DNA of 27,496 bases. Source: Andalucia godoyi And28. Lineage: Eukaryota; Protista; Jakobida. The translations under genes and the position numbers were made by a program. The notes beneath the pieces were generated by a model, which saw nothing but the letters and a program-made list of their open reading frames with translations, was not told the DNA's origin and searched no databases. The DNA lies in the NCBI GenBank assembly GCA_009859145.1, contig VRVR01000028.1:6865-34360 (forward strand). The letters run 5' to 3'. This document shows, in pieces, positions 3,310 to 26,896 of the stretch. The first letter of the stretch is position 1; the number at the start of each line of letters is the position of its first letter.

Positions 3310-4749
3310 TTGGTGAGCCGCCGCCGAACTTTGCACGGTATCACAGACAGGATGTGCGCTGCTGGCGTGATATGGCCGCTGCAGTTTGGATCGTACTATC
3401 TGCTTCGTCCGGCGTTTATGAGCGAGTATGGACAAGCACTCGTGAAAGCAGTGACCTCGGTTTCTGACCAGCGAGGAAGCTATTTGCACCAAGATTTGCT
3501 GCGCGGTGACTTTGTTCATCGAGACGCCTTGTCTGTGCAAATCACGGATCATGAGCATCAGATGATGCTTCATGGCCTGGACCATACGTTCTCGAAGCAG
3601 ACGATTTGCATGCGAGAGGCCGTTGGAGGAAATTCAATGGTCTTGTTTTTTCCGGCACTGTGTCGCATGGAGCATCCGCCGCTGGTTCGCCATCCATCCG
3701 TGCTGGTCACCTATTCGTTTTCGGGGCCTGCGGAAGACATTTATGCAACTCTGGTGATCCGCATGCACTACACGGGCGAGTTCAAAAAGAAGGGGCTTTG
3801 GATGCGTGCTGTTGAATTTTCATCGAAGAAGAGCGATTCGAAGATTATGGGATGTAAGTTGACTCCTGGTACCGAGGAGCGAAACGGGTCGCTGAACGTG
3901 TTTTTCGATCCCCAGATTGAAATCGGCGAGATAATTCTGTTTTGCCAGTTCATTCACAATCACCTTCACCAGAAGAATGCAAAAGACGTTGTGCGAATTC
4001 GCCATTATGTCTGTGCCTGTGGATGCGCGTCAGACAATCACGTTGTTCAAAAAAGAAAGGATCGTGGATGCGACTTTGTTCGTTGTCCTGATTGCGACAA
4101 GAAGATGCCTTTTGAAGACGAGATTGAAAGGCATTTTGTGGATCCGGAGGTGGATGTGCGCGTGGCAGAGCTGAACGTTCAGACGAACTTTGCTCTGGAT
4201 AACGAGAGCAAGGAACGGGTGCTTGTGGGAGAAGTCATTGCGATGGCGTCAAATGCTGGGCAGATCTGCCGCGAGCTCACGACTTCGGATCACGGAATTG
4301 ACGTGGAAATCGAGTTCAAGAACGATGGCCATCAAGACACTGGTCAACGCTTTTATCTGCAGTTGAAATCCTGCGATTCTCACCTTTACAAGAGAGCAAA
4401 TGGCGACGAGGTGTTTCGCATCCCGAACGTCCGACACCACAAATATTGGAGCGAGTCGTCTTCGTATGTGTTTTTGGTGGTTCGATCGTCGAATGGGGAT
4501 ATTCGGTGGATGGCAATCCGCGAGCATTTGAGACAGCTGCATGCCGATCATCCCAACATCGACATTCACCAAATCATCTTTCAAGGCGAGCCGTTCAGCA
4601 TTGCATCGATTCGCCAATGGAGAGAACGAGTGCTTCATGAGGCTCAAGTACCGTGCAGACCTGCGGTTGTGAACCAGCCCACTGCCGAGGACGAGGACGA
4701 CAGTTCATCGGGCCCCTCTTCACCGGCTCCAAAGCGCAGCAAACGGTAA
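3310..4749 (+). CDS. COR-like region + Zn-ribbon + DUF4365-type PD-(D/E)XK nuclease; resembles the C-terminal half of prokaryotic WD40/Roc-COR-DUF4365 proteins; 5'-truncated relative to them
   Basis: 479-codon ORF (TTG start; first ATG at 3352). Segments HPSVLVTYSFSGPAEDIYATLVIRMHY, YVCACGC...CPDC, LDNESKERVLVGEVIAMASNAGQICRE, SDHGIDVEIEFK, FYLQLKS, RHHKYW, IRWM and IFQGEPF match my recollection of that prokaryotic family. No Roc G-motifs are present in this ORF. Confidence 0.85.
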   Translation: MVSRRRTLHGITDRMCAAGVIWPLQFGSYYLLRPAFMSEYGQALVKAVTSVSDQRGSYLHQDLLRGDFVHRDALSVQITDHEHQMMLHGLDHTFSKQTICMREAVGGNSMVLFFPALCRMEHPPLVRHPSVLVTYSFSGPAEDIYATLVIRMHYTGEFKKKGLWMRAVEFSSKKSDSKIMGCKLTPGTEERNGSLNVFFDPQIEIGEIILFCQFIHNHLHQKNAKDVVRIRHYVCACGCASDNHVVQKRKDRGCDFVRCPDCDKKMPFEDEIERHFVDPEVDVRVAELNVQTNFALDNESKERVLVGEVIAMASNAGQICRELTTSDHGIDVEIEFKNDGHQDTGQRFYLQLKSCDSHLYKRANGDEVFRIPNVRHHKYWSESSSYVFLVVRSSNGDIRWMAIREHLRQLHADHPNIDIHQIIFQGEPFSIASIRQWRERVLHEAQVPCRPAVVNQPTAEDEDDSSSGPSSPAPKRSKR

Positions 4750-6256: not shown

Positions 6257-6859
6257 GTTGAATAGTGCTCTTGTCTTGGAGAATTGAGATGGTGAAAATA
6301 CACGGGAATAAACATCAACATCCACGGTGTCTCTTGGACATGCAAGGATCTCCATATCGAAGAATCACATGGCCCCCAACGCCACCTCCCCGGCACCACT
6401 CCAGCAAGCATGAAAGCAGAATCGAGAACCTCGTGGAGGTTCGCCAATCGGAAATTGCCGGGCCGGCAGCCGCATGCGTGTAACCAGAATCAAAGCAGCA
6501 GCCAGAATGCCGCACCAGAAGGTTTCCATTGCTCGTGCAACATTCTCAAAGAAACTCAGAGACCTCTGGGGCTCTGAGGGTGAGGATGGGAGGCGAGCAA
6601 TTTACGAAATTTGCAATCTGGATTGGGAGTTAGCGCAGGAAGACAGCGAGGTGCTCAGGCAACGATTCGTGTAGTGTGAGACGCGAGTCGCTGTGCCGCA
6701 GGCAGTCGGGGAATTTTGCGGGACGGGGGTCACACTACAGTCAGAACATCCCAAATTTCGAGTTTTAAGGAAACGAGGACCGACATCAACAGCCTGATAC
6801 TTTTTTTCTTTCTTTCTTCTTTTTGCCTGTGCGTTTATGCACTGTTCCGATATAAAGTG

Positions 6860-7492
6860 ATGGCGATGGTAAGTAGGGAGAGCTATGAAGAGAACGTGCA
6901 GACGATTCAGGAACGGGAGAAAAAGAGGGCATGGATGAGGTACGATCCCACCTCGGACGGACCGCTGCACAATTGGCTGTCTCGGAATCGTCCAACTCAA
7001 GTGTGTGCAGACGAGGTAGCATGGATCTGCATTTCCAATCCGTTCCGGCAACAAGAAGAAAATGAGGAAGCAAGTGATCTGGGTGCAATGATCGACATGT
7101 GGAACGACTATGCCGCTCATCTTTGGAGACCCGCCGAAATGGTTGCATATGCGGACGACCTTGCCAGAGAATTCAATGTCTTGAGTGGAAAATGGATGGT
7201 TTTCTGCGATCCGACCACTGTCGACGGAGCATGGGAATCGATCTGTGTTGGTGTTTTTCAAGGATCTCTTGGATCCGCTGCCAAGGTGAGTCCTATTGGA
7301 AATCAGTCAAGGTCCGTGATTTGCGTGTACACGAGCGATTACATGGACAGAGCAGGTGTATTTCGGCTGCGAGACATCCTGCGAAGACTGGGCTTCACGG
7401 CAGGACTCGGATTCAAGCCGGATGTGTACACTCATTTGGGGATATACAGGGGAAATCCATGGAACATACGCCCAGTCCGTTACTGGGATTGA
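6860..7492 (+). CDS. DUF1917 / UPF0696 (C11orf68/Bles03-like) protein, eIF4E-like fold
   Basis: LSGKWMVF...VDGAWESI...AAKVSP...VICVYTSDYMD...V...LRRLG....FKPDVYTHLGIY-x2-NPW is the characteristic DUF1917 pattern. First ATG (6860) follows a T-tract. Confidence 0.85.
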   Translation: MAMVSRESYEENVQTIQEREKKRAWMRYDPTSDGPLHNWLSRNRPTQVCADEVAWICISNPFRQQEENEEASDLGAMIDMWNDYAAHLWRPAEMVAYADDLAREFNVLSGKWMVFCDPTTVDGAWESICVGVFQGSLGSAAKVSPIGNQSRSVICVYTSDYMDRAGVFRLRDILRRLGFTAGLGFKPDVYTHLGIYRGNPWNIRPVRYWD

Positions 7493-10108: not shown

Positions 10109-11804
10109 ATGACGGAGAAAATGATCCGATCAGTGCACGTGCGGCAAGAAAACAACAATAGGAAACCCGTTCACTTCTTCTCCGTCGGCTCCATGAAAAG
10201 GCTGCTCTCCGTCATCAAGGGCCTTGATAAACCGTCGAATTCGGACAGCAGATCGACTCTCATCCGAATCACTCCTGCTGACAAAAATAACGTGCAATAC
10301 GTTCTTTTCGTTCAATCTGATTCTCTTCAGATTCCGCTGTATGAAACTTTTCAATGCGCCTTCATGCGGCTCGTCCATCTGTTCATTACTGACTACTTTA
10401 GCAGGAAAGACTGGACTAACAGTGCGCATCATTCTGGAAAGACGAAATTCATCTGGGACATTTTCATTCTTGCTGCCGAGCGACCACAAACATACAGCGA
10501 AAGGTCTCGCACTGACGTCCGTCATTATTTTTCAAAAAAGACTGCACAGCAAAAAACAAATCGAAAACTGACGGAAACTCTGCTGCGGCGGGAGCTAAAG
10601 AAGGGAGTGACGTTGGAATGTTTCCGATGTGAACGGGCAAGCGAGTTGCCATGGTGGAGAATTGTCGGTCACGCGTCTGGAACATCATCGGTCAGCAATG
10701 TAGCAGTGCAAGAGATTTCTTTTCACCATCCATGCGAAGATTTCTCAATCTCTGCGATCAATCTGCTCATGATGCTTCCCGGCGGGCAACAGCAACCAGT
10801 CGAACTTGCGACGATTACACTCGTGGCGGAACGTGTTGTGGATCCCAAGGCATATGGGTTGTCTGTGCGTATCAAGTATTCCAGAGGCGTTGGTCCAATC
10901 CGTGTGGTTCCGGACCCCGTTTCTTTCGTCCTCGAGCACACTGTGTACCCGGGTCGCGTCAGGAACATGGCTCCCGATCCGAGGAAGAAACGAGTCGCAC
11001 GCGGGTTTGATCAATGGCGCTCTCGGCTGGTGTATACGCGCGCCCCGCGATCCAGATCGAATAAAGTACAATCGATTCCGACGATCCGCATGATCGACAG
11101 GAATCTGCTTCGACAAGCACAGACGAAGCTGAGCCCGGAAACGGTGGCGCTTGCCAAGTCGGCGGTGAAGATTGACAATCATGCGAGTGTGTTCCGTCTG
11201 CTTTCGGAACTTGCGCTGCTGGGTTCGTCGCAGGCTCTCCGGCGATTTGATGTCGCATCCGTTCTGCTAAGCCTGCTGCCCAGTCATGGCTGCGATGAGC
11301 CTCGTGCGCGAGTGAATGTGGGCCCGGAGCTGATCAAAAACAAGAGATTCAAGCTGCATCCTGGACTCGGAGCGGCCATCTCGTTCGCTGAAGCCACCGC
11401 ATCGTCGCATGCGTATCTGACGTTTGTTTAACTGACTGTAGCGATGCATACGGGATTAAGACGCAGATGGTCAGGTCGTATCGTGCACATCCAATGTTGA
11501 TGCAAGTTCCCAACAAGCTCTTCTACAAGGGCACACTCCAGACCGTTCCGCCGTCATCACGGTGAACTACTTGCTCAGCATTCATCGGTCCGAAGTAGCA
11601 CATCGGGAACAACACTCTCGCTTGAACGGTGATGTGGAAAGAAGCGTGTCGACCACGACCCTGGGCGTGATTTCACCGTATGCCGCACAGGTTGTGAGGC
11701 GCAAAGAATTGTGCGCAAGTGAGTCGGTGTTGCGGAACTGCGCAGAGCTTACGAAGTCTGTACGTGTTGCGGCAGGATTGTCGTTTGATGGTCATGGCTT
11801 TTGA
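10109..11804 (+). pseudogene. Decayed or internally deleted MOV10/SDE3 (Upf1-like SF1B) RNA helicase-like gene
   Basis: The 440-aa ORF ends with NHASVFRLL...LRRFDVASV (cf. SDE3/MOV10 NY..YF..LL..EE....R.YDM..V). Frame 1 at 11473-11541 gives RSYRAHPMLMQVPNKLFYKGTL (cf. RNYRSHP.IL..PN.LFY...L). Frame 3 at 11661-11693 gives LGVISPYAAQV. Walker A/B and motif VI were not found, and the pieces lie in three frames. Confidence 0.55.
11413..11441 (+). other. Candidate 29-nt spliceosomal intron
   Basis: GTATCTGACGTTTGTTTAACTGACTGTAG has GT...AG ends and a CTGAC branch-like motif. Removing it deletes the TAA stop of the 440-aa ORF and joins it in frame to DAYGIKTQMVRSYRAHP. Confidence 0.3.
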
Positions 11805-12598: not shown

Positions 12599-15500
12599 CT
12601 ACTCGTACAACCCGGGGAGAACACTGCAGAACAGGAACTGCGCGGCGAACAGAGCGCTAGTGAAGGAAGCATATGGCTTTGCAGCGTCCGTTCGCGATCC
12701 TGCGAAGTCCATCACTGCCTTTTGGAACAAGAAGATTGGTTTCCTGGGTTCATTCTCAATCGCCTTGGCAATTCCAACGCCTTCCATCTCGATGGCACGC
12801 AGCTTGCGGGATGCGGTATCTCTGCGCAGCTGGTCCCATCCTGCTTTGTTTTGGAGATCCTCCTTGACATGGTCCACTGCACAACCTATGGAACCGGTCA
12901 GTGCATTGGCCTTGATTGGGATACCATTTGTGTTGGAATTCAGCATCTTGCCATACGTAGAGGAAGCCGCAATGAACGTCGCTATGCCAGAAGATGGATC
13001 CTCGATCTTTGCATTCCACACGCTCACTGTGTTGGAGATCAGTGCTTGGAGATTCGCACCCGGCGCAGAATTCAGGGTGATCCTTTCAATGTCGAATTTC
13101 ATGCCTTCGTGCGTCGCCTTGCCTCGTGTCACACTAAACACATCCGTTGCCACAACGACGGTCCCGAAGCCAATGTCATTGTATCCCGGATACCCAGCAC
13201 AAACACCCGAGACAAGGACGTGCGACGGCTTGAAATGCAGCAGTAACTGGGGCACGACTACCGCAAAATGAACTGATCCTTGGACGTCGCCAAAGTTGAT
13301 GTGATGCAGCCGGTACACTTCCGTATTGCCGCGACCCTTGTTTCGGAAAATGAACGTCTGGATCTCCAATGGATGAACTTGATCCTCGGAGAGCTTCGCA
13401 CTGGCCTCTACGCACTCCACAGACACGTGGGTGGGGTCTAAGAGGTCTGCCAAGACGGGATTCTCGTTCCCGCACAGCGATTCCAAGAGCCGGTTCCGAG
13501 TTGCTCCTGAAACCTTCTTCGCTGCCTTTCCAATGTCGCACAGCTGGATGAATGCAACTTTGAAGGCTGTGCCCTCTTCAGGTGTTACAGTTAGAATAAT
13601 GCCAACGCCGGGCGACAATCGAGCAGGCTGTGCAGGCGGCACGCTTGAGGACGCAGATCCATGCGACGTGGGCGCTTGGGAAGCAACACGGGTAGGAATA
13701 CTCGCAGCAGGCGGAAAGAGAATGGCGTTGACTTCTGCTAGAACAGCGGGATACTGAGACAGAAATTGGTGGAAACGCGGAAGTGCATCCTCATGCTTTG
13801 GGTTCAGAACAATCTTTTTCATCCACTTTTTCACCGCTTGTTCTCGATCGTCCATCTCCAGCAAGGTGTCCGACTGACCAGGGCTAATGTTGTACAAGGC
13901 ATGTACTGCATTCTTGAAGACTGCATCATAATGCCTCACAAAGTACCTGAGGAAAGGAATCAGCTGCGCATCAAAGGCAGCTATGAATTCAGTTCGCGTG
14001 CGGGATGACAAAGATGGACCACGAGCAAACTCGCTCTGAGTGACAGAAGTGGCGACTAGCTCACACGAGAGCACGGATCTGGACATCGGATCCTCATTCA
14101 GAAACGCAGTCAACAATTCAAACATATCTGGTACACCCGTCGCATGAGGGGAAGACAAGGTATCAAAATGGAAAATGGAAGAGGCTCCTTTCTCACGATC
14201 AAGACGGATTCTGCACCTCAAGGAACTAGCAGGACGACAAACGATTACATCAAGCCCCAGTGCCGGGGGGGAATTAAGAGAGATGTTAGGATACAGACCC
14301 CGCTTTCCAAGGAATGTGATGAACCGCCAGAAATGCAGATCGGTCACCACTCCGTCGTACATTCCAGCCAAGACTCCGCATCCGATACATCGAACTGAAA
14401 GTGAAACCGGAGTAGCGGCAGCAGTGTTGGAGCATATCGACGTCCAGCGAATACCAAGCGTAACCGGAGCGTGTGTGTGCGGATCGCAGTGACGGTGCCA
14501 CTGTGGGAAGTACACAAGTTTGGATTCTTGGTCCATCGGAACAACAACACCAAGCGTGACGAGCATCGCAAGAACCTGTTCCGCAACCAACCTGTGAGAA
14601 TCAACAGGGCAAATCTTGTTAACAAGAAGATATCCTTCCATAATACCTTTCGCTGTTTCATACTGGATAATACCCGCATACTCCAACAAATCCTTGTAGA
14701 TAACCCTTTTGCTATGACCAACATGCAGCAGTCCGCCCTTTCCATCCGTCGGCGGAATTAGTTGAGCACACGTACGGATGAAGACATCCGGTCGCAACAC
14801 GATCATGTGTCCATCCGACGAACAGGCAAAGAAACATCCGAGCGCGACTAGATCATCAAAACCTTCCTTAATCTCATCTGGCGTCATGCCCAAGGCAGCG
14901 ATTCCTGGTATCCGAACGCTGATCTGATCGACAGCAAGTACCACATCCTTACAATCCCTGCACATCTGCTCGAGAACAAGGTTACGTAGGAGAACCTTTG
15001 GCAGTCGACGATGGAATTCTTCAATCTCCTTGGACAGCCACTCCATCATTGGTTTCTGGCCGTTCTTCCGCTGACGACTGTCTTTTTCGACAACGATGAA
15101 CCATCGATCGTCGGAGAACTGTTGAACTTCAAAGAACGCTTTGAACTGAGGTTGCACGAGAACCTTTCCCAAGCACGAATTGCACGCATCCAGAAACGTC
15201 TTCTGCCAGTCCCATTCGAGAGAGGAAAGAAAACTACGAACCTTGTCCCACAAAGATGCAGCATACGAGTTTCCATGCGTGCCGATGAGCACCACCTTCG
15301 ACATCAATTTCTCTTCTTTGGTCGCATTGCACGCGCCAACATTGGCAATGATGCGCAGCCACGAAAAGATGTTACTCTCGATTGCCTTCTCCAGTGTCCC
15401 GGTCTGATGGGCGGCATACAGATCGCGTAGGCTAAACACGCAAAAGTACAGAGATTGCTTGCCGAAGAAGAGCGGATCAAACACGCGAAACACGTTCTGA

Positions 15501-16519
15501 CCTGCAAAATCGAGAATACTCACCGACAGCGTATCTTTCTCCAGATCTGTCAATACTCGAGAGGCGACGTTGATGCGTTCACGAGCAGTGACTGTTTCGC
15601 GAGCAACATTCGGCGATGGTGGAGATGCGGAAGCAGATGGCTCTTGAATCGCAGTAGTCGCACTCATTAAATCATCAACTTGCGCTGACGCTGGCCCGAT
15701 CACGGGTGATTCCCCTGTGCTCGGTTGGGGGGTGGAGGAACCATCAGTATTTCGGAGTGGCGTTCTGGTCTCTTGTTCCCTATTCGCGACGTGTCGCTGC
15801 ACCATTCGCTTCAACAGCGTTGTTCCAATGCTCGTTGTGGTGTCGGTCCACACATGCTTCCGGATCGGTATCTCCAGCGTTCGCACATCACCCACTTCCG
15901 TGGAATTCTCCGTTGGATCAAATTCTGTCCCACCAGACGAGAGGTTCTTGATCAAGCTCGTCTTTCCCACCCGTGCATTTCCAACCACCAGCAGACGCAA
16001 GCGCGACGGCCCAACCCATACGCTATCATCAATTTCGATGTTGGAAATATCAATCTGCATATCTGTGAAGTTGGGAACTGGAAATGAAAGCGGTCGGATG
16101 TCTCCGAGATCTTCCAACAGAGATCGATTGGATGGCGCAGTCGTGATTGCTTCCAGAGGAGCCACAACCTGTTCGCCCACAAGATACTCGGCAGACATGA
16201 ACCGCAGGTCGAACACGGATTTTGAAATGGAAGACGATATTGCGCGGTAACGGGCACTCACAGAACAATCAGCCTCAGGAATGAGATGCAGGATTTCTGT
16301 GGAACCGTCATCGTTGCCTTCTACAACAAGAATGCGATGGCCAACTCGCACAGCGGAGCAACAACATCTTGGAATCGTCAAACTCGGACCATCAATCCAC
16401 CTGTCCATTCGAGGTTCGTAAATCTCGACAGTATCAGTTCCAATACCTCCAATTGCATAGATCAAGCCATGGACAATGACTGCAGAGTGCGAAAAACGTT
16501 GCGCGTTCATCGATGACAC
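12599..16519 (-). CDS. ROCO protein: Kelch repeats-Roc GTPase-COR-helical domain-PNP_UDP_1 (MTA/SAH nucleosidase / ATP-nucleosidase-like) effector; downstream part of a gene starting at 17149
   Basis: 1306-aa ORF. Kelch (IYAIGG...VEIYEPRMDRW); P-loop GNARVGKTS (15956-15982); G3 DFAGQ (15497-15511); G4-like IGTHG (~15272-15286); COR-like LVALGCFF...IVLRPDVF. PNP motifs GIILTVTPEE, PSHVLVSGVCAG, GTVVVATDV, IEMEG (EME 12782-12790) and KAVMDFA...PYASFTSALFA. Confidence 0.92.
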   Translation of the reverse strand: MSSMNAQRFSHSAVIVHGLIYAIGGIGTDTVEIYEPRMDRWIDGPSLTIPRCCCSAVRVGHRILVVEGNDDGSTEILHLIPEADCSVSARYRAISSSISKSVFDLRFMSAEYLVGEQVVAPLEAITTAPSNRSLLEDLGDIRPLSFPVPNFTDMQIDISNIEIDDSVWVGPSRLRLLVVGNARVGKTSLIKNLSSGGTEFDPTENSTEVGDVRTLEIPIRKHVWTDTTTSIGTTLLKRMVQRHVANREQETRTPLRNTDGSSTPQPSTGESPVIGPASAQVDDLMSATTAIQEPSASASPPSPNVARETVTARERINVASRVLTDLEKDTLSVSILDFAGQNVFRVFDPLFFGKQSLYFCVFSLRDLYAAHQTGTLEKAIESNIFSWLRIIANVGACNATKEEKLMSKVVLIGTHGNSYAASLWDKVRSFLSSLEWDWQKTFLDACNSCLGKVLVQPQFKAFFEVQQFSDDRWFIVVEKDSRQRKNGQKPMMEWLSKEIEEFHRRLPKVLLRNLVLEQMCRDCKDVVLAVDQISVRIPGIAALGMTPDEIKEGFDDLVALGCFFACSSDGHMIVLRPDVFIRTCAQLIPPTDGKGGLLHVGHSKRVIYKDLLEYAGIIQYETAKGIMEGYLLVNKICPVDSHRLVAEQVLAMLVTLGVVVPMDQESKLVYFPQWHRHCDPHTHAPVTLGIRWTSICSNTAAATPVSLSVRCIGCGVLAGMYDGVVTDLHFWRFITFLGKRGLYPNISLNSPPALGLDVIVCRPASSLRCRIRLDREKGASSIFHFDTLSSPHATGVPDMFELLTAFLNEDPMSRSVLSCELVATSVTQSEFARGPSLSSRTRTEFIAAFDAQLIPFLRYFVRHYDAVFKNAVHALYNISPGQSDTLLEMDDREQAVKKWMKKIVLNPKHEDALPRFHQFLSQYPAVLAEVNAILFPPAASIPTRVASQAPTSHGSASSSVPPAQPARLSPGVGIILTVTPEEGTAFKVAFIQLCDIGKAAKKVSGATRNRLLESLCGNENPVLADLLDPTHVSVECVEASAKLSEDQVHPLEIQTFIFRNKGRGNTEVYRLHHINFGDVQGSVHFAVVVPQLLLHFKPSHVLVSGVCAGYPGYNDIGFGTVVVATDVFSVTRGKATHEGMKFDIERITLNSAPGANLQALISNTVSVWNAKIEDPSSGIATFIAASSTYGKMLNSNTNGIPIKANALTGSIGCAVDHVKEDLQNKAGWDQLRRDTASRKLRAIEMEGVGIAKAIENEPRKPIFLFQKAVMDFAGSRTDAAKPYASFTSALFAAQFLFCSVLPGLYE

Positions 16520-16549
16520 GTCCGACCACCTACCTTCCCGAGGATCACA

Positions 16550-17149
16550 TCATTCAACACTTCGCAAGAAATGCAGTTTGGAACGACCACCAGTCGCAGA
16601 AATACAATTATTTGTAGGATCCGCGACAGCCGCAAACAACGATCTTGATCGTTTCATTGAATGTGTTTCAGGAAACCATTGATCAGTCTGCGGATCGTAT
16701 GTCTTGACGGAAGAAAGATGGGTCCTATTCGAAATTCCGCCGAGCACGAAAATCCTTTCATTCAAGCAAACTGCACAATGGTTGTCTTGAAAAATGCTTA
16801 ACTTGGAAGGCAGAGGTGACCAACTTTCATCTGCGCCATTTCTGAGAACATGCACAGAATCTTCTCGAATGCAGAAAATGCCTCTATCACGTAAAACAGT
16901 TGAAACAGAATACGGAAAAGCACCGTTCAATGCAGGTCCACGCCTCCAACGCAATTCCGGAACATCTGTATCGAGCACTTCGACCTGCCGATTGCAATCA
17001 ATTGCATAAATTTGACCATTTGGCTTAACAACTGCAGTGCAATAGCTTTGAATATTTTGTAATCGCAGTCCCGGCAGCCAAACTCCATGAGAATCATCTC
17101 TTCGGTTGATGGCTTCCCATTGCTCCTCCAAATTCCCACTCATCGCCAT
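16550..17149 (-). CDS. N-terminal Kelch-repeat segment of the ROCO gene, in frame with 12599-16519 and separated from it by a single TGA
   Basis: Kelch motifs (QIYAID, RWRRGPAL, RIFVLGG...SVKTYDPQTDQW). Translation across the stop reads FLRSVE*CDPREGRWSDVSSMNAQRFSHSAV, which is one continuous Kelch repeat. Confidence 0.85.
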   Translation of the reverse strand: MAMSGNLEEQWEAINRRDDSHGVWLPGLRLQNIQSYCTAVVKPNGQIYAIDCNRQVEVLDTDVPELRWRRGPALNGAFPYSVSTVLRDRGIFCIREDSVHVLRNGADESWSPLPSKLSIFQDNHCAVCLNERIFVLGGISNRTHLSSVKTYDPQTDQWFPETHSMKRSRSLFAAVADPTNNCISATGGRSKLHFLRSVE

Positions 17150-17560
17150 GGCTCCAAAACTGCAAAATCAACGTCAATCCGTCTCGCTGCTGAGTGTGTG
17201 AATCTTCCAAGAGAAAGAATTAGAGCTCTCTCCTTCGGTGGGAATAACCCGAAGGCTCGATTCATCAAGTCAATGATACTTTGCAACAATGAGAATAGCC
17301 ATTCATTTTGCTAACTTCAGAAGCCAAGACTTCAAATGTGAAGGAGCGTCTTAATGACGACTGCCATCCGCTGACCTTCGGCGGTTCTCCCTCACGTCCG
17401 CGGGTTCTACTCTGCTCAGACGTGCCAAAATCCTTGAGCACGTCACGATTGCATCAACACATCCCTTGAAAATGAATTGCACCTTGCTCGTTGCCATCTT
17501 GATAATTTTTTTAATTTTCCCAACTTCACACACCCGCATGCATATTTCCTCATTAGCAAA

Positions 17561-18580
17561 ATGGGCATCTTGGCGGAAAAAGCATCCAACCCTCGTCGCT
17601 GGAATCGGACCGACACGGTGAAGGCGATCAAGATTCTAGTCGTTCTTGCATGGACGGTTGTTCTGTGCGCCACGTTTCGCTCTCTGAACTGCGTCTATGC
17701 GGACCAGCAAGATAACGTTGGAGGTGGAAGCTCGACGAACGGGCCAACAGGGTCATGGTGCTGGATAAGGGGGTCGTCCCTCGAGTCGGAACTGGATGCC
17801 TTGAGATCGCACGGTTACTCGGACATCCTTGTCACGAATGGGAAAGTTCCTCTTTCCGGGTTCTACTATTTTCAATGGCAGTGGGTTACTCTGGTCACCG
17901 TGCTGTACGCCGCGATTTCTCATGTCGCAACGAGGATCATGGAAATCAAGGACTATGTCAGCTTCGGATATTGGTATCACAGAATCATTTTTATTGCAGG
18001 GGGACTGATCGCCTCCGTGCTCAAAATGTGTTTTGACGGAATCAACTCTGAACTAAACCAACGGACTGTGTATCTAACCTCAAGCAATTTACCAGGGTTT
18101 GTGTTGGCTGTGAAGTCAGCGGCAGACTGTGCAAGTCGGTCCTTCTGTGTTCAAGCCGATTTCTCTGATGCCGGATTACCAAGCACAAATCTTCTTGTTT
18201 TGGCAATCCTACTAGCCCTCCTTTCCACATCATATATATGGGCCTCCATTTTGAATGCTTTTTGCTGCTGTTGTGTCGACAAAGGCACCTCTTATCTGCA
18301 GGTGTTGATTCTCCAACTGAACGTTTTGCTGAGCATCATCATTGCCGGAGGTGTGGTTCTGATTGTGGTCATGTGGGACGACATGGACTACATTTTTCAA
18401 TTTCCGAAATTCTCGCCTCAGGTATACTTGGGGTTTGGCGTAATGGGGTTTCTGGATGCTTTTGCAGACACACTGCTGCTGTTTAATTGGTCGTGTGCAC
18501 GTTCGAAACGATCACATACATCACACCTTCCAACAGCAGATCCGTTTGCCACTTCGGATGCGGTGTATTACAGGCTGTGA
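17561..18580 (+). CDS. Multi-pass (about 7 TM) membrane protein with a GSWCWI motif, weakly cAMP-receptor/GCR1-like GPCR
   Basis: 339 aa from the first ATG (ORF open from 17477). Six strong and one weak hydrophobic segment. LAWTVV...GPTGSWCWIRG. Confidence 0.75.
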   Translation: MGILAEKASNPRRWNRTDTVKAIKILVVLAWTVVLCATFRSLNCVYADQQDNVGGGSSTNGPTGSWCWIRGSSLESELDALRSHGYSDILVTNGKVPLSGFYYFQWQWVTLVTVLYAAISHVATRIMEIKDYVSFGYWYHRIIFIAGGLIASVLKMCFDGINSELNQRTVYLTSSNLPGFVLAVKSAADCASRSFCVQADFSDAGLPSTNLLVLAILLALLSTSYIWASILNAFCCCCVDKGTSYLQVLILQLNVLLSIIIAGGVVLIVVMWDDMDYIFQFPKFSPQVYLGFGVMGFLDAFADTLLLFNWSCARSKRSHTSHLPTADPFATSDAVYYRL

Positions 18581-22205: not shown

Positions 22206-24857
22206 CTACAACAACAAACTGAGAACGAAAACGAAGCACACCCACTTGTCCCAGACAGCAAAACGCAACGATCCACTTTCAGAGGACCGGACAACCGGCA
22301 GTGTCAGAGTGCCAAAGTACTCTTTCTGATCATTCACGTTGAAAACAGTCCAGACGACTTTCACCGACGCAGCGTCTTTTGCCACAGCCGAGGGAAGAGA
22401 AAACGAAACAGATGCTGGATGCCCTTCACGATGCCCTTCCGCAATCGGTACAATGGAAATTCCCTGAGGTCCCAGCACTTCTGCGTGCCAGCGAGCTTCA
22501 AATCCTGACCGAAGTACTGGCGATCCTGGCATATTGTACGATACATGGTACTTGCCATCAACGACAGCATTCAGTTTCAAGGGATAGACTTCTGTGCTCT
22601 GCTGACAGAGAGGAAGGCTCGAGATAGCGGAAGTGACAATCTGCTGCGGAAGACTTCCAACGTCAACTGTGATCACCACCGGAACTGCAGTGGAGGACCG
22701 ATTCACGTTGAGGATAACTTGATTTGTTTCTGCAATTGAATTGGGGAGCGAAACTTGGAAAGCCTGAAGCGTTGCAGGTGTGATGCATGGAAGAACTTGG
22801 TAAGAAGCGGTTCCGCAGGCTTGCGTCCACAGCGGCCAGTAGGCACCCGGACATGATGACAAGAAGGGAACAACAACGCTCACAATGTCCCCAGCGTCCG
22901 TTGGATTTTCCGGCCCTCGACAGGTTCCATTCGTGATCTGGAGACTGTCACGAACGGTGCACTGGCAAAGTTGCTGGTTCGGACCAAAAGAGAAGCTATC
23001 GCACGAGCAAGACGCTGTTGAAAAGGCATCCGAATACACACACTTGCCGAAAACGCAATTCGGGCACTGAACGTTACAAGAAGAGCCTCTCCACTCGGTC
23101 CTGCACACACACGTCCCATTGCCGTATCGTCCATCCACACAGTGATCCGTGTTCGTCTGATTGCACAAACACCGCTGCGAACAGTTCCAACCATAATCAT
23201 ACAGAGCACAAATATGGGTATCACATGTCGGAAACTGCGGTGTCGGACGTAATGACAGCAAAAGTTGGTCATCCCCCATGAAATTCTGTGTTCCATTCGA
23301 TGCTGCCATGGAAAAGGTCGTGCTGATCCTGTAAGAATAGTCTCCGATAATAATGTCCGAGAGGGCAGGTATGGGAACAAACGATCCCGTGGACACAGAT
23401 AGAGGGCACTGCCCATTTGGAATGTCTTCAGGATTCGTGTTTCGTAGACAGAATGAACAAAATGCATCATCATGTACCACATCACAGCAAGCAGTGCAAG
23501 AAGCAAGGCTCAGTCTGTTTGCGGGATTCCGAATCACACAGCGTGGCGACTGCGCGCAGCTCAGTGGCGATTGTTCTTGAGGAAATATCGTTACTGCAAC
23601 GGAATCCACGACCTCCACAGTCAAAGTTTTGGTCGACGGAGAGCAGAGAAAGTTGAGCGTTGCATTTCCGAAAGGAGCAACGAAAGAAGCAGATGTTCCG
23701 TTGTCGGGCGCGCACTGACGCGACGGGATAAAAGCAATCTCATCGCCAGCGATGGCATCTCCGATGCTGACCACATGGGAGTCATTGCTCATCACCGTAA
23801 AGGATGCCCCAAAGGACGTCTGGTTCAGGAATGTCCGAAAACATGACTGGTCACTGAGAGCCAATGCACTGGAAGAGTCGGGACAGATGTTCGAGTCTGG
23901 AATGGCCCAATCAGCCGGAATCGTGCTTGTGAGTAAAACGGAGAAATCTTTGATATCTGTAGACACTCGATAGTGTTCCCACAATGGGACAACAGACGAA
24001 GGATCCGCAGCTGGCTGAGAAGCCGAATAAATCAGATTATTACTACCGTACCGGACGGGAATCTCGCCATACCAGCCAACGCCGCCCTGCAATGTACCGA
24101 ACAATTTCGGCGAAATGACCCCTGCAAAGGAAATGTAGTACGAACTTCCACAAGGGGCATCGATGTGCAGTTCAAGCACGCCGACTCCTGAAATTCGGAT
24201 TTCAAACGCTCCTGCATACGCAATGACACTGATCGGGCCTTGCGAGAACACATCGAGATCCGTAAGCAGGGCCGACGTCAAAACTTTTGACGTTCCATCC
24301 CTTCCATAGCAAGTCAACGCAGATGGGCTCGTTGCTTCACATGCTAACCCGGAACCGGAGTAGTGATCAATCCGAAGTCCGTTGATGGCCCCCACATGTC
24401 CACACCACGGAGCCACTCTTGCGACGAGAGCAAACTGGGGGCTGAGTAGCAGGTAGACATTCCCCGAAAAATCCAGGGAAAAGACAATGGCGGTCAGAAT
24501 CGCCTGACAATGGGGGTCTTCATAACAATAAAAGTATCCAGGAGCCACGACACCTTTCGAGAGACAGTCGTACCCGCTGCTGCCCAAGTTGCACTGACAA
24601 ACATTGTTGGCAACACACGTTCCGTCTCTTGCAGCAAATCCACATCCTCCAAACATGCAACACGCATCTGCGTCGTCGGATGGCATGAATGTCTGTGGGT
24701 CTGCGACTGCATTATCTTCAGCTGCAGTCATAAACGCTTCGTAGCGGAGATGAAGCGCCTTGCTGTCAAACGCCCTCTTTGCGTGAACAAGGGCTGCAGG
24801 ACCAAAGAAGGCCAAAAAAATCGCAGAAAGAAGGACGAGATGACGGATCATCTTCAT
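22206..24857 (-). CDS. Large cell-surface protein with signal peptide, EGF-like Cys repeats and hydrophobic (GPI/TM-like) C-terminus
   Basis: ORF open to 25025. ATG 24857 gives MKMIRHLVLLSAIFLAFFGPAALVHA. EGF-like CVANNVCQCNLGSSGYDC and CALYDYGWNCSQRCLC...GNGTCVCRTEWRGSSC. Ends WVCFVFVLSLLL. Confidence 0.85.
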   Translation of the reverse strand: MKMIRHLVLLSAIFLAFFGPAALVHAKRAFDSKALHLRYEAFMTAAEDNAVADPQTFMPSDDADACCMFGGCGFAARDGTCVANNVCQCNLGSSGYDCLSKGVVAPGYFYCYEDPHCQAILTAIVFSLDFSGNVYLLLSPQFALVARVAPWCGHVGAINGLRIDHYSGSGLACEATSPSALTCYGRDGTSKVLTSALLTDLDVFSQGPISVIAYAGAFEIRISGVGVLELHIDAPCGSSYYISFAGVISPKLFGTLQGGVGWYGEIPVRYGSNNLIYSASQPAADPSSVVPLWEHYRVSTDIKDFSVLLTSTIPADWAIPDSNICPDSSSALALSDQSCFRTFLNQTSFGASFTVMSNDSHVVSIGDAIAGDEIAFIPSRQCAPDNGTSASFVAPFGNATLNFLCSPSTKTLTVEVVDSVAVTIFPQEQSPLSCAQSPRCVIRNPANRLSLASCTACCDVVHDDAFCSFCLRNTNPEDIPNGQCPLSVSTGSFVPIPALSDIIIGDYSYRISTTFSMAASNGTQNFMGDDQLLLSLRPTPQFPTCDTHICALYDYGWNCSQRCLCNQTNTDHCVDGRYGNGTCVCRTEWRGSSCNVQCPNCVFGKCVYSDAFSTASCSCDSFSFGPNQQLCQCTVRDSLQITNGTCRGPENPTDAGDIVSVVVPFLSSCPGAYWPLWTQACGTASYQVLPCITPATLQAFQVSLPNSIAETNQVILNVNRSSTAVPVVITVDVGSLPQQIVTSAISSLPLCQQSTEVYPLKLNAVVDGKYHVSYNMPGSPVLRSGFEARWHAEVLGPQGISIVPIAEGHREGHPASVSFSLPSAVAKDAASVKVVWTVFNVNDQKEYFGTLTLPVVRSSESGSLRFAVWDKWVCFVFVLSLLL

Positions 24858-24892
24858 TTGGATTGGGAAATCGAGGGATGATAAAGTATATA

Positions 24893-24924
24893 CTGCAAAA
24901 ACAAGGAAGGAAAAAAAAAGGAAA
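24893..24924 (-). promoter_or_regulatory. Polypyrimidine tract + CAG, 36 nt upstream of ATG 24857 (splice-acceptor-like or T-rich leader element)
   Basis: Minus strand reads TTTCCTTTTTTTTTTCCTTCCTTGTTTTTGCAG. Similar tracts precede several other starts. Confidence 0.35.
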
Positions 24925-25522
24925 CGGGACTTTAACCGAGCAACGGCACTAAAGCTTTTGAGATAGGTTGCAGCAGCAGGGATATTCTCGAAACCCAATA
25001 TCCAACCCCAGAAAATTCGACGCACAGAAATCCTGCGGAAATGCCTTGCTTTGTTCTTTGGGCACCGGCCAAAATTCGAAAATTCGGCGAGGATTCGACG
25101 CCGCCGAGATGAACGCCCCAGAACAATGGCCGATCTGAGCGAAAACAGAAGACGGATGTTCGGAATGCTGTCCGAGCAAAGCGACTGAAAACAATGCAGG
25201 GGCGTGTTGGGTCAAATCATTCAGCTGTCATCGTAAGCTCACATGTCAATCAAACCGATCGCGCATGCTTTGGCAGCTGTGATTCCAAATGCAGATGTCA
25301 AGATGTCGAGCTTGCCGATTTGGCGTAGCAGCAAGACGGATGGCTCGGACAGTGTTGGTTACAGAATCCGTGAATCAAGACACGTACGTTTCGGAGCAGA
25401 ACGAGGCGAGCAGAGTAAGGTCCCAAAAATTTGCACACAAAGTCAGCAAAAGGTCAGGAGCGACCCACTTTCTGATTTGTGTTTCTTGCTGAACGACGAA
25501 TGAACACGGATGATCAGTGAAT

Positions 25523-26896
25523 ATGATGGAGTCGCATGCCTCTGTTGAGTTCCTCTCGCGGCTGAACATATATCTCATTGTAATCTCTCTGTTCACAATC
25601 ACATTCAATGTCTTGTACGACATTTCAGAGTTTGCCACGATTCCAGATAACCTTCGGATAGGTTTTTGTCTGGTTGCGATTTGCGGTGCCATAACACTGA
25701 TTGCTGTTATGTTGTACTTCTTGCAAGAATCCTTGCTTCGAGATACCTTAGAGAAACGGTTTGTAACCGAGGAGATGCCTTGTCTGAAACTCGAGGTCCA
25801 CTACCTCATCATGACTGGACTGCTGGTGGCGGGCCTCTTCTTCTACGTAATTGTACAGAGAATTCATCCTTGGCATTTGGTTTTGAATGCCTTCTCAACT
25901 TTTCTTTTGACCGGGGTCCTGCTTTTGTTGATTAGCGGATCCTACTCGCTGATGACGGGCTACGAAGAGACTCGCCTTGCTGCAGACATTATTCGATGGA
26001 CACTGTTTGCTCATGCCGTCGCGTCGCTGTTGGTGAATATCCTTCTCTCTGCTGTTTCCGCCGATACTGCTCGGAACATTTTCACGGATGACGAGCCGGG
26101 ACGCAATCTGGTTGAGGTTTTTATTGAGTTTTTTAACATTTACGATATATTTGTCTTGTTCGCAACCGGAGGAGGTTTTGAGCCATTTTTCTCCGCTGTC
26201 GAAATTCCCAGCGAGTTTGTTGGATCTCCTGGAGCTATGAGTGCGTCAGGAGTTTTCAACAACAGATTCAAGTTTTCTGGAGTGTTCCTGAAGTCTCTCG
26301 TCAAGCCTTTTATCGTCTTCTTGCCGTTCACCGAATGTGTGTTTTCGTTCACGATTCATTCCGATCAGGATAATCTCTCCTATGAATTTCTGGATGTTTT
26401 TGGAGGTGTTTATATTATTTTCGTGATTTGCCTCTTAGCTTCTGTGATCAGAAGACCTACTCTCAAGGGCCTGCTGCAAGACCGCCGTGATGATCAGGAC
26501 ACATTCAAGGACTATCGTAGTTGGGTGACTTTAGTTGTCGTCGCCATCTGTGCAGACATCACTGCTAATGCATTGTCTCTCGCCGCTACTGTGGATGACA
26601 ATAGCATGGGAGCGAACAAAGACTGGAAAGAATCGTGGTGGATGATCGCAATTGGATTCGAAGTGGACATTTTAGCCATTGTCCACTTTTTCTTCTTCTC
26701 CGAAGGGCTTGTTTCAAACTATGTCAAGCAGTTTCTCGTCGTTCGCGGTGTCGCTCGACTATTGTTTGGTGCACTAACCCTCGGTTCATTTGACGCCTCG
26801 ATTGTCGCAGTTTTAATATCACTGAGGAACATCTTTAATATCTTGTGCATTGAAACCCACCTGTTGCGACATTCTCCCGAGACAGAGCCGGCATAA
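25523..26896 (+). CDS. Multi-pass membrane protein of unknown family (about 10-12 hydrophobic segments)
   Basis: ORF 25517-26896, first ATG at 25523, strongly hydrophobic throughout. The C-terminal third aligns with the ORF at 26940-27496. Confidence 0.8.
   Translation: MMESHASVEFLSRLNIYLIVISLFTITFNVLYDISEFATIPDNLRIGFCLVAICGAITLIAVMLYFLQESLLRDTLEKRFVTEEMPCLKLEVHYLIMTGLLVAGLFFYVIVQRIHPWHLVLNAFSTFLLTGVLLLLISGSYSLMTGYEETRLAADIIRWTLFAHAVASLLVNILLSAVSADTARNIFTDDEPGRNLVEVFIEFFNIYDIFVLFATGGGFEPFFSAVEIPSEFVGSPGAMSASGVFNNRFKFSGVFLKSLVKPFIVFLPFTECVFSFTIHSDQDNLSYEFLDVFGGVYIIFVICLLASVIRRPTLKGLLQDRRDDQDTFKDYRSWVTLVVVAICADITANALSLAATVDDNSMGANKDWKESWWMIAIGFEVDILAIVHFFFFSEGLVSNYVKQFLVVRGVARLLFGALTLGSFDASIVAVLISLRNIFNILCIETHLLRHSPETEPA

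Follow-up and report, generated by a model that had tools for sequence, protein, structure and literature searches.

The stretch of DNA considered here (the window; 27,496 nucleotides, positions 6,865 to 34,360 of contig VRVR01000028.1, assembly GCA_009859145.1) comes from Andalucia godoyi And28. Its principal feature is a long reverse-strand gene that encodes, in order, a Kelch propeller and a Roc-type GTPase, then a conserved middle region and a helical linker, and at the C-terminus a nucleosidase domain of the PNP/MTAN fold. All close homologues of the long open reading frame (ORF) are A. godoyi proteins (ANDGO_ identifiers in EukProt and NCBI), and a eukaryote-type Bles03 domain is also encoded in the window, so the window is nuclear DNA of this jakobid flagellate. 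The genome is compact (~20 Mb) and its genes are mostly without introns (PMC7050145). The gene occupies 12599..17149 (-), where a colinear frame of 1516 codons runs from an ATG at 17149 to a terminal stop at 12599-12601 and is interrupted by a single in-frame TGA. Residue numbers below refer to this conceptual frame. No further copies of the family were found within the window by tblastn.

The TGA is codon 200 (16550-16552, -) and falls in the last strand of the fourth Kelch blade. In ORF calling the gene thereby falls into a 199-aa piece (16550-17149) and a 1306-aa piece (12599-16519); the original prediction treated the span as one uninterrupted gene and overlooked this stop. The window copy reads 'SVE*CDPREGRW' where the paralogue ANDGO_00489 (P0002) reads 'SVERRDLRAEKW', and in the alignment the paralogues have an arginine at the position of the TGA, well inside a conserved Kelch motif. 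With tblastn, residues 1-1190 of P0002 align without a break to 17143-13643, spanning the TGA. Since the codons are colinear with P0002 across the stop, neither an intron nor a chimeric join is present there, and an intron removing the TGA was rejected on the colinearity of the flanking codons with the Kelch motif of the paralogue. A selenocysteine or structured-RNA account was likewise rejected, as an Rfam scan of the window returned no SECIS element and no other family. The public protein model (P0001, 1303 aa) begins at the next ATG downstream of the TGA (MNAQRF), and the 199-aa upstream ORF has no entry in the protein collection searched. Given the premature in-frame stop, the window copy has probably become either a recent pseudogene or a truncated gene, the source of an N-terminally shortened product of ~1303 aa that lacks the propeller. 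The TGA could instead be an assembly or sequencing error. The intact paralogue ANDGO_00489 presumably serves as the functional representative of the architecture.

The N-terminal domain is a Kelch beta-propeller of six blades (16277..17083, -; conceptual residues 23-291), defined by Pfam, by matches to solved structures and by the paralogue alignment. Both pieces of the ORF contain Kelch_1 (41.2 and 34.1 bits, E 1.1e-10 and 1.9e-8; gathering score 20.1), and solved Kelch proteins in the Protein Data Bank (PDB) match with E 1.5e-12. All six blades are recognizable by eye in the conceptual frame, in agreement with the propeller originally predicted. The TGA lies at the end of blade 4 and splits the propeller of the window copy, from which several GG doublets of the paralogue propeller have also gone.

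The propeller is followed by a Roc-type GTPase (15002..16021, -; residues 377-716), identified by Pfam, by profile comparison with the PDB and by hhalign. The Pfam Roc match scores 36.9 bits (gathering score 27; E 5e-9) and comes in two stretches owing to an insert, and Roc is matched in all six paralogues. The best solved relative of a six-paralogue profile is the Roc domain of LRRK2 (E 8e-7), followed by the RocCOR fragment of Methanosarcina MbRoco2 (4wnr, E 4e-5). In hhalign the alignment to LRR-Roc-COR proteins has a probability of 98.9 and covers the region from G3 to the end of Roc. The P-loop (G1, GNARVGKTS, 15956-15982, -) and G3 (DFAGQ, 15497-15511, -) are canonical, and the switch-I threonine is present (STEVGDV, 15884-15904, -). 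Between switch I and G3 lies the insert, a Ser/Thr/Pro-rich segment of ~100 aa predicted to be disordered (15530..15829, -) with a predicted local distance difference test score (pLDDT) below 35. Two metagenomic Roc-COR-A proteins (P0164 and P0165) likewise have a split Roc, and in the corresponding position their insert is longer still. The G4-like motif (GTHGN, 15269-15283, -) lacks the aspartate: it reads T-H-G-N where LRRK2 has T-H-L-D, which departs from the canonical T/N-K/H-x-D. This aspartate is missing in six of six A. godoyi paralogues and in three relatives from outside Andalucia (THxN). The Roc domain of the original prediction, with its G1 and G3 motifs, is upheld, and its G4 motif only in part. 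The missing aspartate hints at a relaxed or altered base specificity. Guanine specificity is thus uncertain, and the GTP cycle of LRRK2 should not be copied uncritically onto this protein.

Downstream of Roc, in the position expected of COR, is a conserved middle region of ~310 aa (14072..15001, -; residues 717-1026) that is kept in six of six paralogues. The COR domain that had been predicted here is not confirmed at the sequence level. A Pfam scan relaxed to E<=10 matches neither COR-A nor COR-B, whether in this region or in the six paralogues; the matches of the six-paralogue profile to the PDB are confined to the Roc stretches; and the hhalign alignment to LRR-Roc-COR proteins ends exactly where Roc ends, with no coverage of COR. 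A local hhalign of the middle region to the Pfam-positive COR of protein P0166 gives a probability of 0.1. These negative tests are weak, because the bona fide COR of P0166, searched alone with phmmer against the PDB, itself finds no solved COR; LRR matches dominate the phmmer results for P0166. A search for bacterial ROCO proteins, intended to supply a COR profile, returned one locus, which was LRR-only. An AlphaFold2 model of Roc plus the middle region, built from six sequences, is poor (pLDDT 45.5, predicted template modelling score (pTM) 0.33). In Foldseek this low-confidence model has LRRK1 (8e05) as its sole match at E<=0.001 (E 9.8e-6, 505 aligned columns), and LRRK2 follows (E 1.3e-3 and 1.5e-2, 403-522 columns). 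These alignments are much longer than Roc alone and amount to a weak structural hint of COR. The closest Roc relatives outside Andalucia have COR-A straight after Roc, and according to reviews a Roc without COR has never been reported (PMC6320773). The middle region may be a divergent COR. The label 'ROCO' is accordingly provisional for this family. By eye, the segments 'LVALGCFFAC...VLRPDVF' and 'LGVVVPM...YFPQW' of the middle region resemble winged-helix motifs of COR-A.

A helical linker module (13700..13999, -; residues ~1051-1150) joins the middle region to the C-terminal domain. It is common to P0002 and P0004 (59-66% identity by BLASTP) and appears to be duplicated in P0002, where there is weak internal similarity. 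The idea that the linker is an adaptor shared with the N-terminus of a stand-alone A. godoyi PNP protein (P0007) was dropped for lack of significant similarity.

The C-terminal domain (12602..13624, -; residues 1176-1516) has the PNP/MTAN nucleosidase fold, and its strand 1 is followed by a helical insert of ~50 aa. A Pfam scan of the whole ORF returns Kelch and Roc only, and the PNP domain emerges when it is scanned alone, with a PNP_UDP_1 (PF01048) score of 18.2 bits (E 0.0018) that is below the gathering score of 25.1; the paralogue P0007 reaches 23.1 bits. Against the PDB, phmmer finds MTAN only (E 0.43, 13 bits). The assignment is carried by the relatives and by the predicted structure. 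An exhaustive phmmer search of 1.84 billion representative sequences gave 339 matches at E<=1e-3, and in 146 of the best 150 of these Pfam identifies PNP_UDP_1. A profile of 14 family sequences finds methylthioadenosine/S-adenosylhomocysteine (MTA/SAH) nucleosidase structures with E 2.6e-17. The AlphaFold2 model of the domain (pLDDT 72, pTM 0.77) matches MTAN structures in Foldseek with E 1.2e-12 and a template modelling (TM) score of ~0.7 on the target. The original prediction's PNP_UDP_1 domain is therefore well founded, even though the Pfam score taken alone is sub-threshold.

The active-site residues are readily recognized. Strand 1 with its acidic pair (GVGIILTVTPEEG, 13571..13609, -) carries E1191 and E1192 and aligns with 'GAMEEE' of MTAN; the pair is also matched in P0008, a metagenomic relative, as 'VILAAVAEEGGAVKIQF'. 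RAIEMEGVG (12773..12799, -) contains M1455 and E1456, aligned with AVEME, and QKAVMDFAG (12698..12724, -) contains D1481, aligned with the catalytic aspartate of MTAN. In the profile alignment the family consensus iitAledE stands opposite iGAMeeE of MTAN, AvEMEg opposite AVEME, and vKsVmD opposite vRavSD; the MTAN residues concerned are Glu12, Met173/Glu174 and Asp197 in E. coli numbering. Because these segments are placed opposite the active-site positions of MTAN, the TPEE, IEMEG and VMD motifs, originally taken as typical of active MTA/SAH nucleosidases, were read correctly. The Met-Glu pair and the aspartate are invariant across the family alignments and are kept in the window copy. R1448 (in SRKL, just upstream of 12773..12799) and K1477 are nearly invariant in the family.

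Several observations place this domain with immune-type nucleosidases. The defence model that matches best is PDC-M60C, a candidate-defence model of PADLOC (E 4.3e-13, 46.9 bits); the 'PN-superfamily effector' model for CBASS (cyclic-oligonucleotide-based antiphage signalling system) matches with E 3.2e-5. For the housekeeping MTAN equivalog NF004079 the score is 18.7 bits, far short of its cut-off of 169; TIGR01704 does not match the domain, and no typical housekeeping MTAN is present among the phmmer matches. The nearest relatives are mostly bacterial proteins of ~400 aa, several with a receiver domain (Response_reg), and others are fused to NACHT, NB-ARC, nSTAND3, SIR2, EAD5 or TPR/HEAT. 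One relative from Bacillus (P0160) lies in an operon with the Detocs layout, whose three genes encode one large protein, one receiver protein and one receiver-PNP protein. On the basis of hidden Markov model scores and relatives rather than a rooted tree, the domain is closer to the immune Cap17/DtcC-type nucleosidases than to housekeeping MTAN, and on this score evidence it does not group with the latter. The closest PNP relative outside Andalucia is P0008 (381 aa, on a 1.6-kb ENA contig; BLASTP E 1e-19). In that protein the PNP domain is N-terminal and precedes a tail of ~120 aa without a Pfam match, which by eye looks helical and Death-like.

The gene belongs to a family of at least six Kelch-Roc-middle paralogues in A. 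godoyi. ANDGO_00489 (P0002) is intact, 1655 aa long, and has the order Kelch-Roc-middle-PNP predicted for the window gene. Compared with P0002, the window copy has 51% identity over Kelch, 59-80% over Roc and the middle region, and 87% over the PNP domain. The C-termini of the other members differ. ANDGO_05994 (P0003), whose protein model lacks the Kelch part, has another C-terminal domain at residues ~890-1162 with DxD-like and 'VDVLPA' motifs; its matches to CD-NTase/SMODS-like families are weak (PADLOC CBASS oligonucleotide cyclase E 6e-4, Pfam SMODS E 0.21), and it has no match in the PDB. This protein may carry a CD-NTase-like effector on the same chassis. ANDGO_07311 (P0004) is without a C-terminal module and ends right after the helical linker, and P0005 and P0006 have C-terminal tails without assignment. 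P0005 (contig VRVR01000031.1) is named in NCBI a 'mitochondrial Kelch and P-loop NTPase domain-containing protein', a label derived from in-silico prediction of the mitochondrial proteome ('unknown function' class) rather than from localisation. There are also two PNP-only genes. ANDGO_01237 (P0007) is a stand-alone protein of 462 aa, 73% identical, with an unassigned helical N-terminus of 120 aa, and ANDGO_00552 (P0162) is a 168-aa fragment in which the catalytic aspartate is replaced by asparagine (VMN), a sign that this copy may have decayed. Divergence of the sensor, conservation of the effector and exchange of C-termini are together what one would expect of conflict receptors, a pattern that supports this view without settling it.

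PNP nucleosidases of the Cap17/DtcC-type clade cleave ATP and dATP, and the D353A substitution in DtcC abolishes defence (Rousset et al., bioRxiv 10.1101/2023.01.24.525353). D1481 of the window gene belongs to the same residue class as the one mutated in that experiment. According to Rousset et al., eukaryotic members of the clade include NLR-like (nucleotide-binding leucine-rich repeat), Death and STING fusions, and the PNP domains from fungi and sponges are active ATP nucleosidases with toxicity in E. coli. That paper makes no mention of Kelch, GTPases or jakobids. By model scores and relatives, the window gene falls in the same PNP clade as NLR-PNP (NLRN, Hyaloscypha), sponge Death-PNP (DDAN) and STING-PNP, with the catalytic aspartate kept, and it is like the eukaryotic immune PNP proteins in combining a repeat 'sensor', an NTPase and an effector and in the swapping of effectors among paralogues. 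It differs from them in having a Ras-like Roc rather than a STAND ATPase (signal transduction ATPase with numerous domains; NACHT or NB-ARC), an N-terminal Kelch propeller, a predicted effector at the C-terminus and a jakobid host. In the Pfam scan no STAND domain was found in the gene, and the central NTPase is Roc. The description 'NLR-like' given in the original prediction is therefore an analogy only.

Comparison with Detocs shows a number of motifs in common with DtcC and PDC-M60C (GxVxxA, GVCxG, GK, RK-x-A-x-EME and K-x-V-M-D), with 24-36% identity over the aligned segments. However, the A. godoyi protein has no receiver domain (no Response_reg by Pfam) and no histidine kinase or phosphotransfer partner, and it is a eukaryotic single polypeptide from a monocistronic gene. 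With housekeeping MtnN it shares the fold (Foldseek E 1e-12, TM ~0.7) and the positions of the catalytic Glu, Met-Glu and Asp. It departs from MtnN in its extra helical inserts, in the conserved K1344, R1448, K1477 and K1486, which are not found in the aligned MTAN, and in its receptor-like fusion. The ROCO proteins (LRRK2, LRRK1, DAPK1, MFHAS1, Dictyostelium Roco and C. tepidum Roco) resemble it in having Roc within a large multidomain protein, with repeats flanking and an output following. The window gene, in contrast, has a nucleosidase as its output and lacks kinase, LRR and death domains; no COR is detected in it by sequence, its G4 reads THGN and its Roc carries an insert of ~100 aa. The absence of a kinase, which had been predicted, holds in the Pfam scan. 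In DAPK1 a death output is coupled to Roc-COR. Dictyostelium has ROCO proteins in which Kelch motifs flank Roc-COR (PMC6320773), and bacterial conflict systems include Roc-like 'AP-GTPases' (PMC7159879). The literature searched (ROCO with PNP_UDP_1, Cap17 with Roco, PNP with NLR and protist) yielded no account of a fusion between Roc and PNP. The claim that the architecture was undescribed thus stands for the combination of Roc with PNP, but not for PNP effectors in eukaryotic immune-like proteins, which were reported by Rousset et al. What is new appears to be the fusion partner, the principle of such effectors being already known.

The family is best explained as a set of large cytosolic proteins, each predicted to consist of a Kelch propeller, an LRRK2-type Roc, the ~310-aa middle region, the helical linker and a variable C-terminal module. 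Within it, the window gene is read as a putative conflict sensor, ROCO-like and analogous to NLRs, that would use an ATP nucleosidase as its effector; we assign this reading a probability of roughly 55%. In such a protein the Kelch propeller would keep the molecule off until a non-self or altered-self ligand is bound. The Roc nucleotide switch, together with the middle region, would then alter the dimer or oligomer state, and the PNP domains would be brought together and activated by proximity. MTAN-type enzymes are obligate oligomers whose active sites need a partner subunit, and for this reason activation by proximity is proposed. The assembled enzyme would remove adenine from ATP or dATP, leading to arrest or death of the cell. 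Several of the observations above weigh against this reading: the chance that the stop codon is an error in the assembly; the sub-threshold Pfam score of the PNP domain; the missing COR matches by Pfam and hhalign, together with the poor model of Roc and the middle region; the mitochondrial label of P0005; and the non-canonical G4, with which Roc may not act as a conventional GTP switch. In addition, the sensor is N-terminal and the effector C-terminal, the reverse of the classical NLR order.

Of the other explanations, the strongest concerns the copy rather than the family. The odds are about even that the TGA is a real nonsense mutation and that the window copy is a dead gene, a recent pseudogene, with ANDGO_00489 alone being functional. 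The stop takes the place of an arginine within a conserved Kelch motif, several GG doublets are gone from the propeller, the public model starts downstream while the 199-aa ORF is missing from the protein collection, there is no SECIS element, and the Asp-to-Asn change in P0162 indicates that decay does happen in the family. However, this is the only disruption in 4.5 kb, all catalytic and P-loop residues are intact, and the PNP domain remains 87% identical to that of the intact paralogue; the stop could also be a sequencing error, and a truncated product could be made from the downstream ATG. The same interruption, with a public model that covers only part of the gene, might suggest that separate Kelch, GTPase and PNP genes were joined artificially during assembly or annotation. 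This is effectively refuted. The frame is otherwise continuous over 4.5 kb with homology to the paralogue on both sides of the stop, four more paralogues share Kelch-Roc-middle, and A. godoyi genes are mostly intron-free (PMC7050145); the independent, intact 1655-aa paralogue has the same order, and therefore the fusion is not an assembly artefact.

A further question is whether the protein is ROCO-like at all. The region after Roc could be lineage-specific and unrelated to COR, in which case the protein would be a Roc-like small GTPase set in a novel scaffold and the dimer-switch scheme of LRRK2 and CtRoco would be inapplicable. This is a serious but somewhat less favoured possibility. It is consistent with the lack of COR-A and COR-B in six paralogues at E<=10, with the profile-profile probability of 0.1 against a bona fide COR, with the hhalign match that stops exactly at the end of Roc, and with the non-canonical G4. 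On the other side, COR is very divergent, so much so that the COR of P0166 finds no solved COR by phmmer; LRRK1 is the sole Foldseek match at E<=0.001 (1e-5, 505 columns), with LRRK2 next, though for a low-confidence model; and both the COR-A directly after Roc in the closest relatives outside Andalucia and the absence of any reported Roc without COR (PMC6320773) argue for a COR here. The output, too, might not be immune. A regulatory or metabolic enzyme, in which a GTPase gates a nucleosidase in nucleotide salvage or signalling, for instance by releasing adenine or a ribose-phosphate messenger, possibly at mitochondria, would fit a superfamily that is mostly metabolic and weak best named matches that are MTAN and futalosine hydrolase. 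Aravind and colleagues have suggested a possible messenger-producing role for the PNPase domains of conflict systems (PMC7159879), the Kelch-containing ROCO proteins of Dictyostelium are signalling proteins (PMC6320773), and P0005 is labelled mitochondrial. Such a role is nonetheless unlikely: the housekeeping model scores far below its cut-off (18.7 against 169), the nearest relatives are of the defence type, the C-terminal modules are swapped while the sensor evolves fast, and the mitochondrial label is a targeting prediction only.

The remainder of the window contains several other ORFs. At 3310-4749 (+) a 479-aa ORF has a C-terminal DUF4365 domain (restriction-endonuclease-like, Pfam E 5e-15) and matches the PADLOC models for a pAgo-associated REase and PDC-M02A with E 3e-7 to 1e-6; it represents a second domain of bacterial-defence type in the same eukaryotic window. 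The ORF at 6716-7492 (+) encodes the Bles03 (C11orf68-like) domain (Pfam E 1.5e-28) and is an ordinary eukaryotic gene. Pfam and PADLOC gave no match for the ORFs at 22206-25025 (-; 939 aa), 25517-26896 (+; 459 aa), 10109-11431 (+; 440 aa) and 17477-18580 (+; 367 aa).

The PNP module of the Cap17/DtcC type is a recently recognized immune module of bacteria, fungi and animals, and the conflict-sensor reading of the jakobid case extends its reach to Discoba, a deep branch of the eukaryotes. That the module is here wired to Roc instead of a STAND ATPase suggests that ROCO-like proteins can fill the role of an NLR. A broader proposal, speculative and on balance doubtful, is that Roc GTPases with a divergent COR may act in Discoba as the core switch in tripartite innate-immune receptors of a third class, independent of STAND and NLR proteins, in which Kelch would gate interchangeable effectors of bacterial type (an ATP nucleosidase, and possibly a CD-NTase-like domain in ANDGO_05994). 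If this is true, an immune or cell-death output would be an ancient role of ROCO proteins, and the family would offer a simple model for the control of an output domain by Roc, relevant to LRRK2, DAPK1 and MFHAS1. How Roc controls its output is the question posed by LRRK2, and a ROCO-like protein with a simple, assayable and toxic enzyme output would be a convenient system for it.

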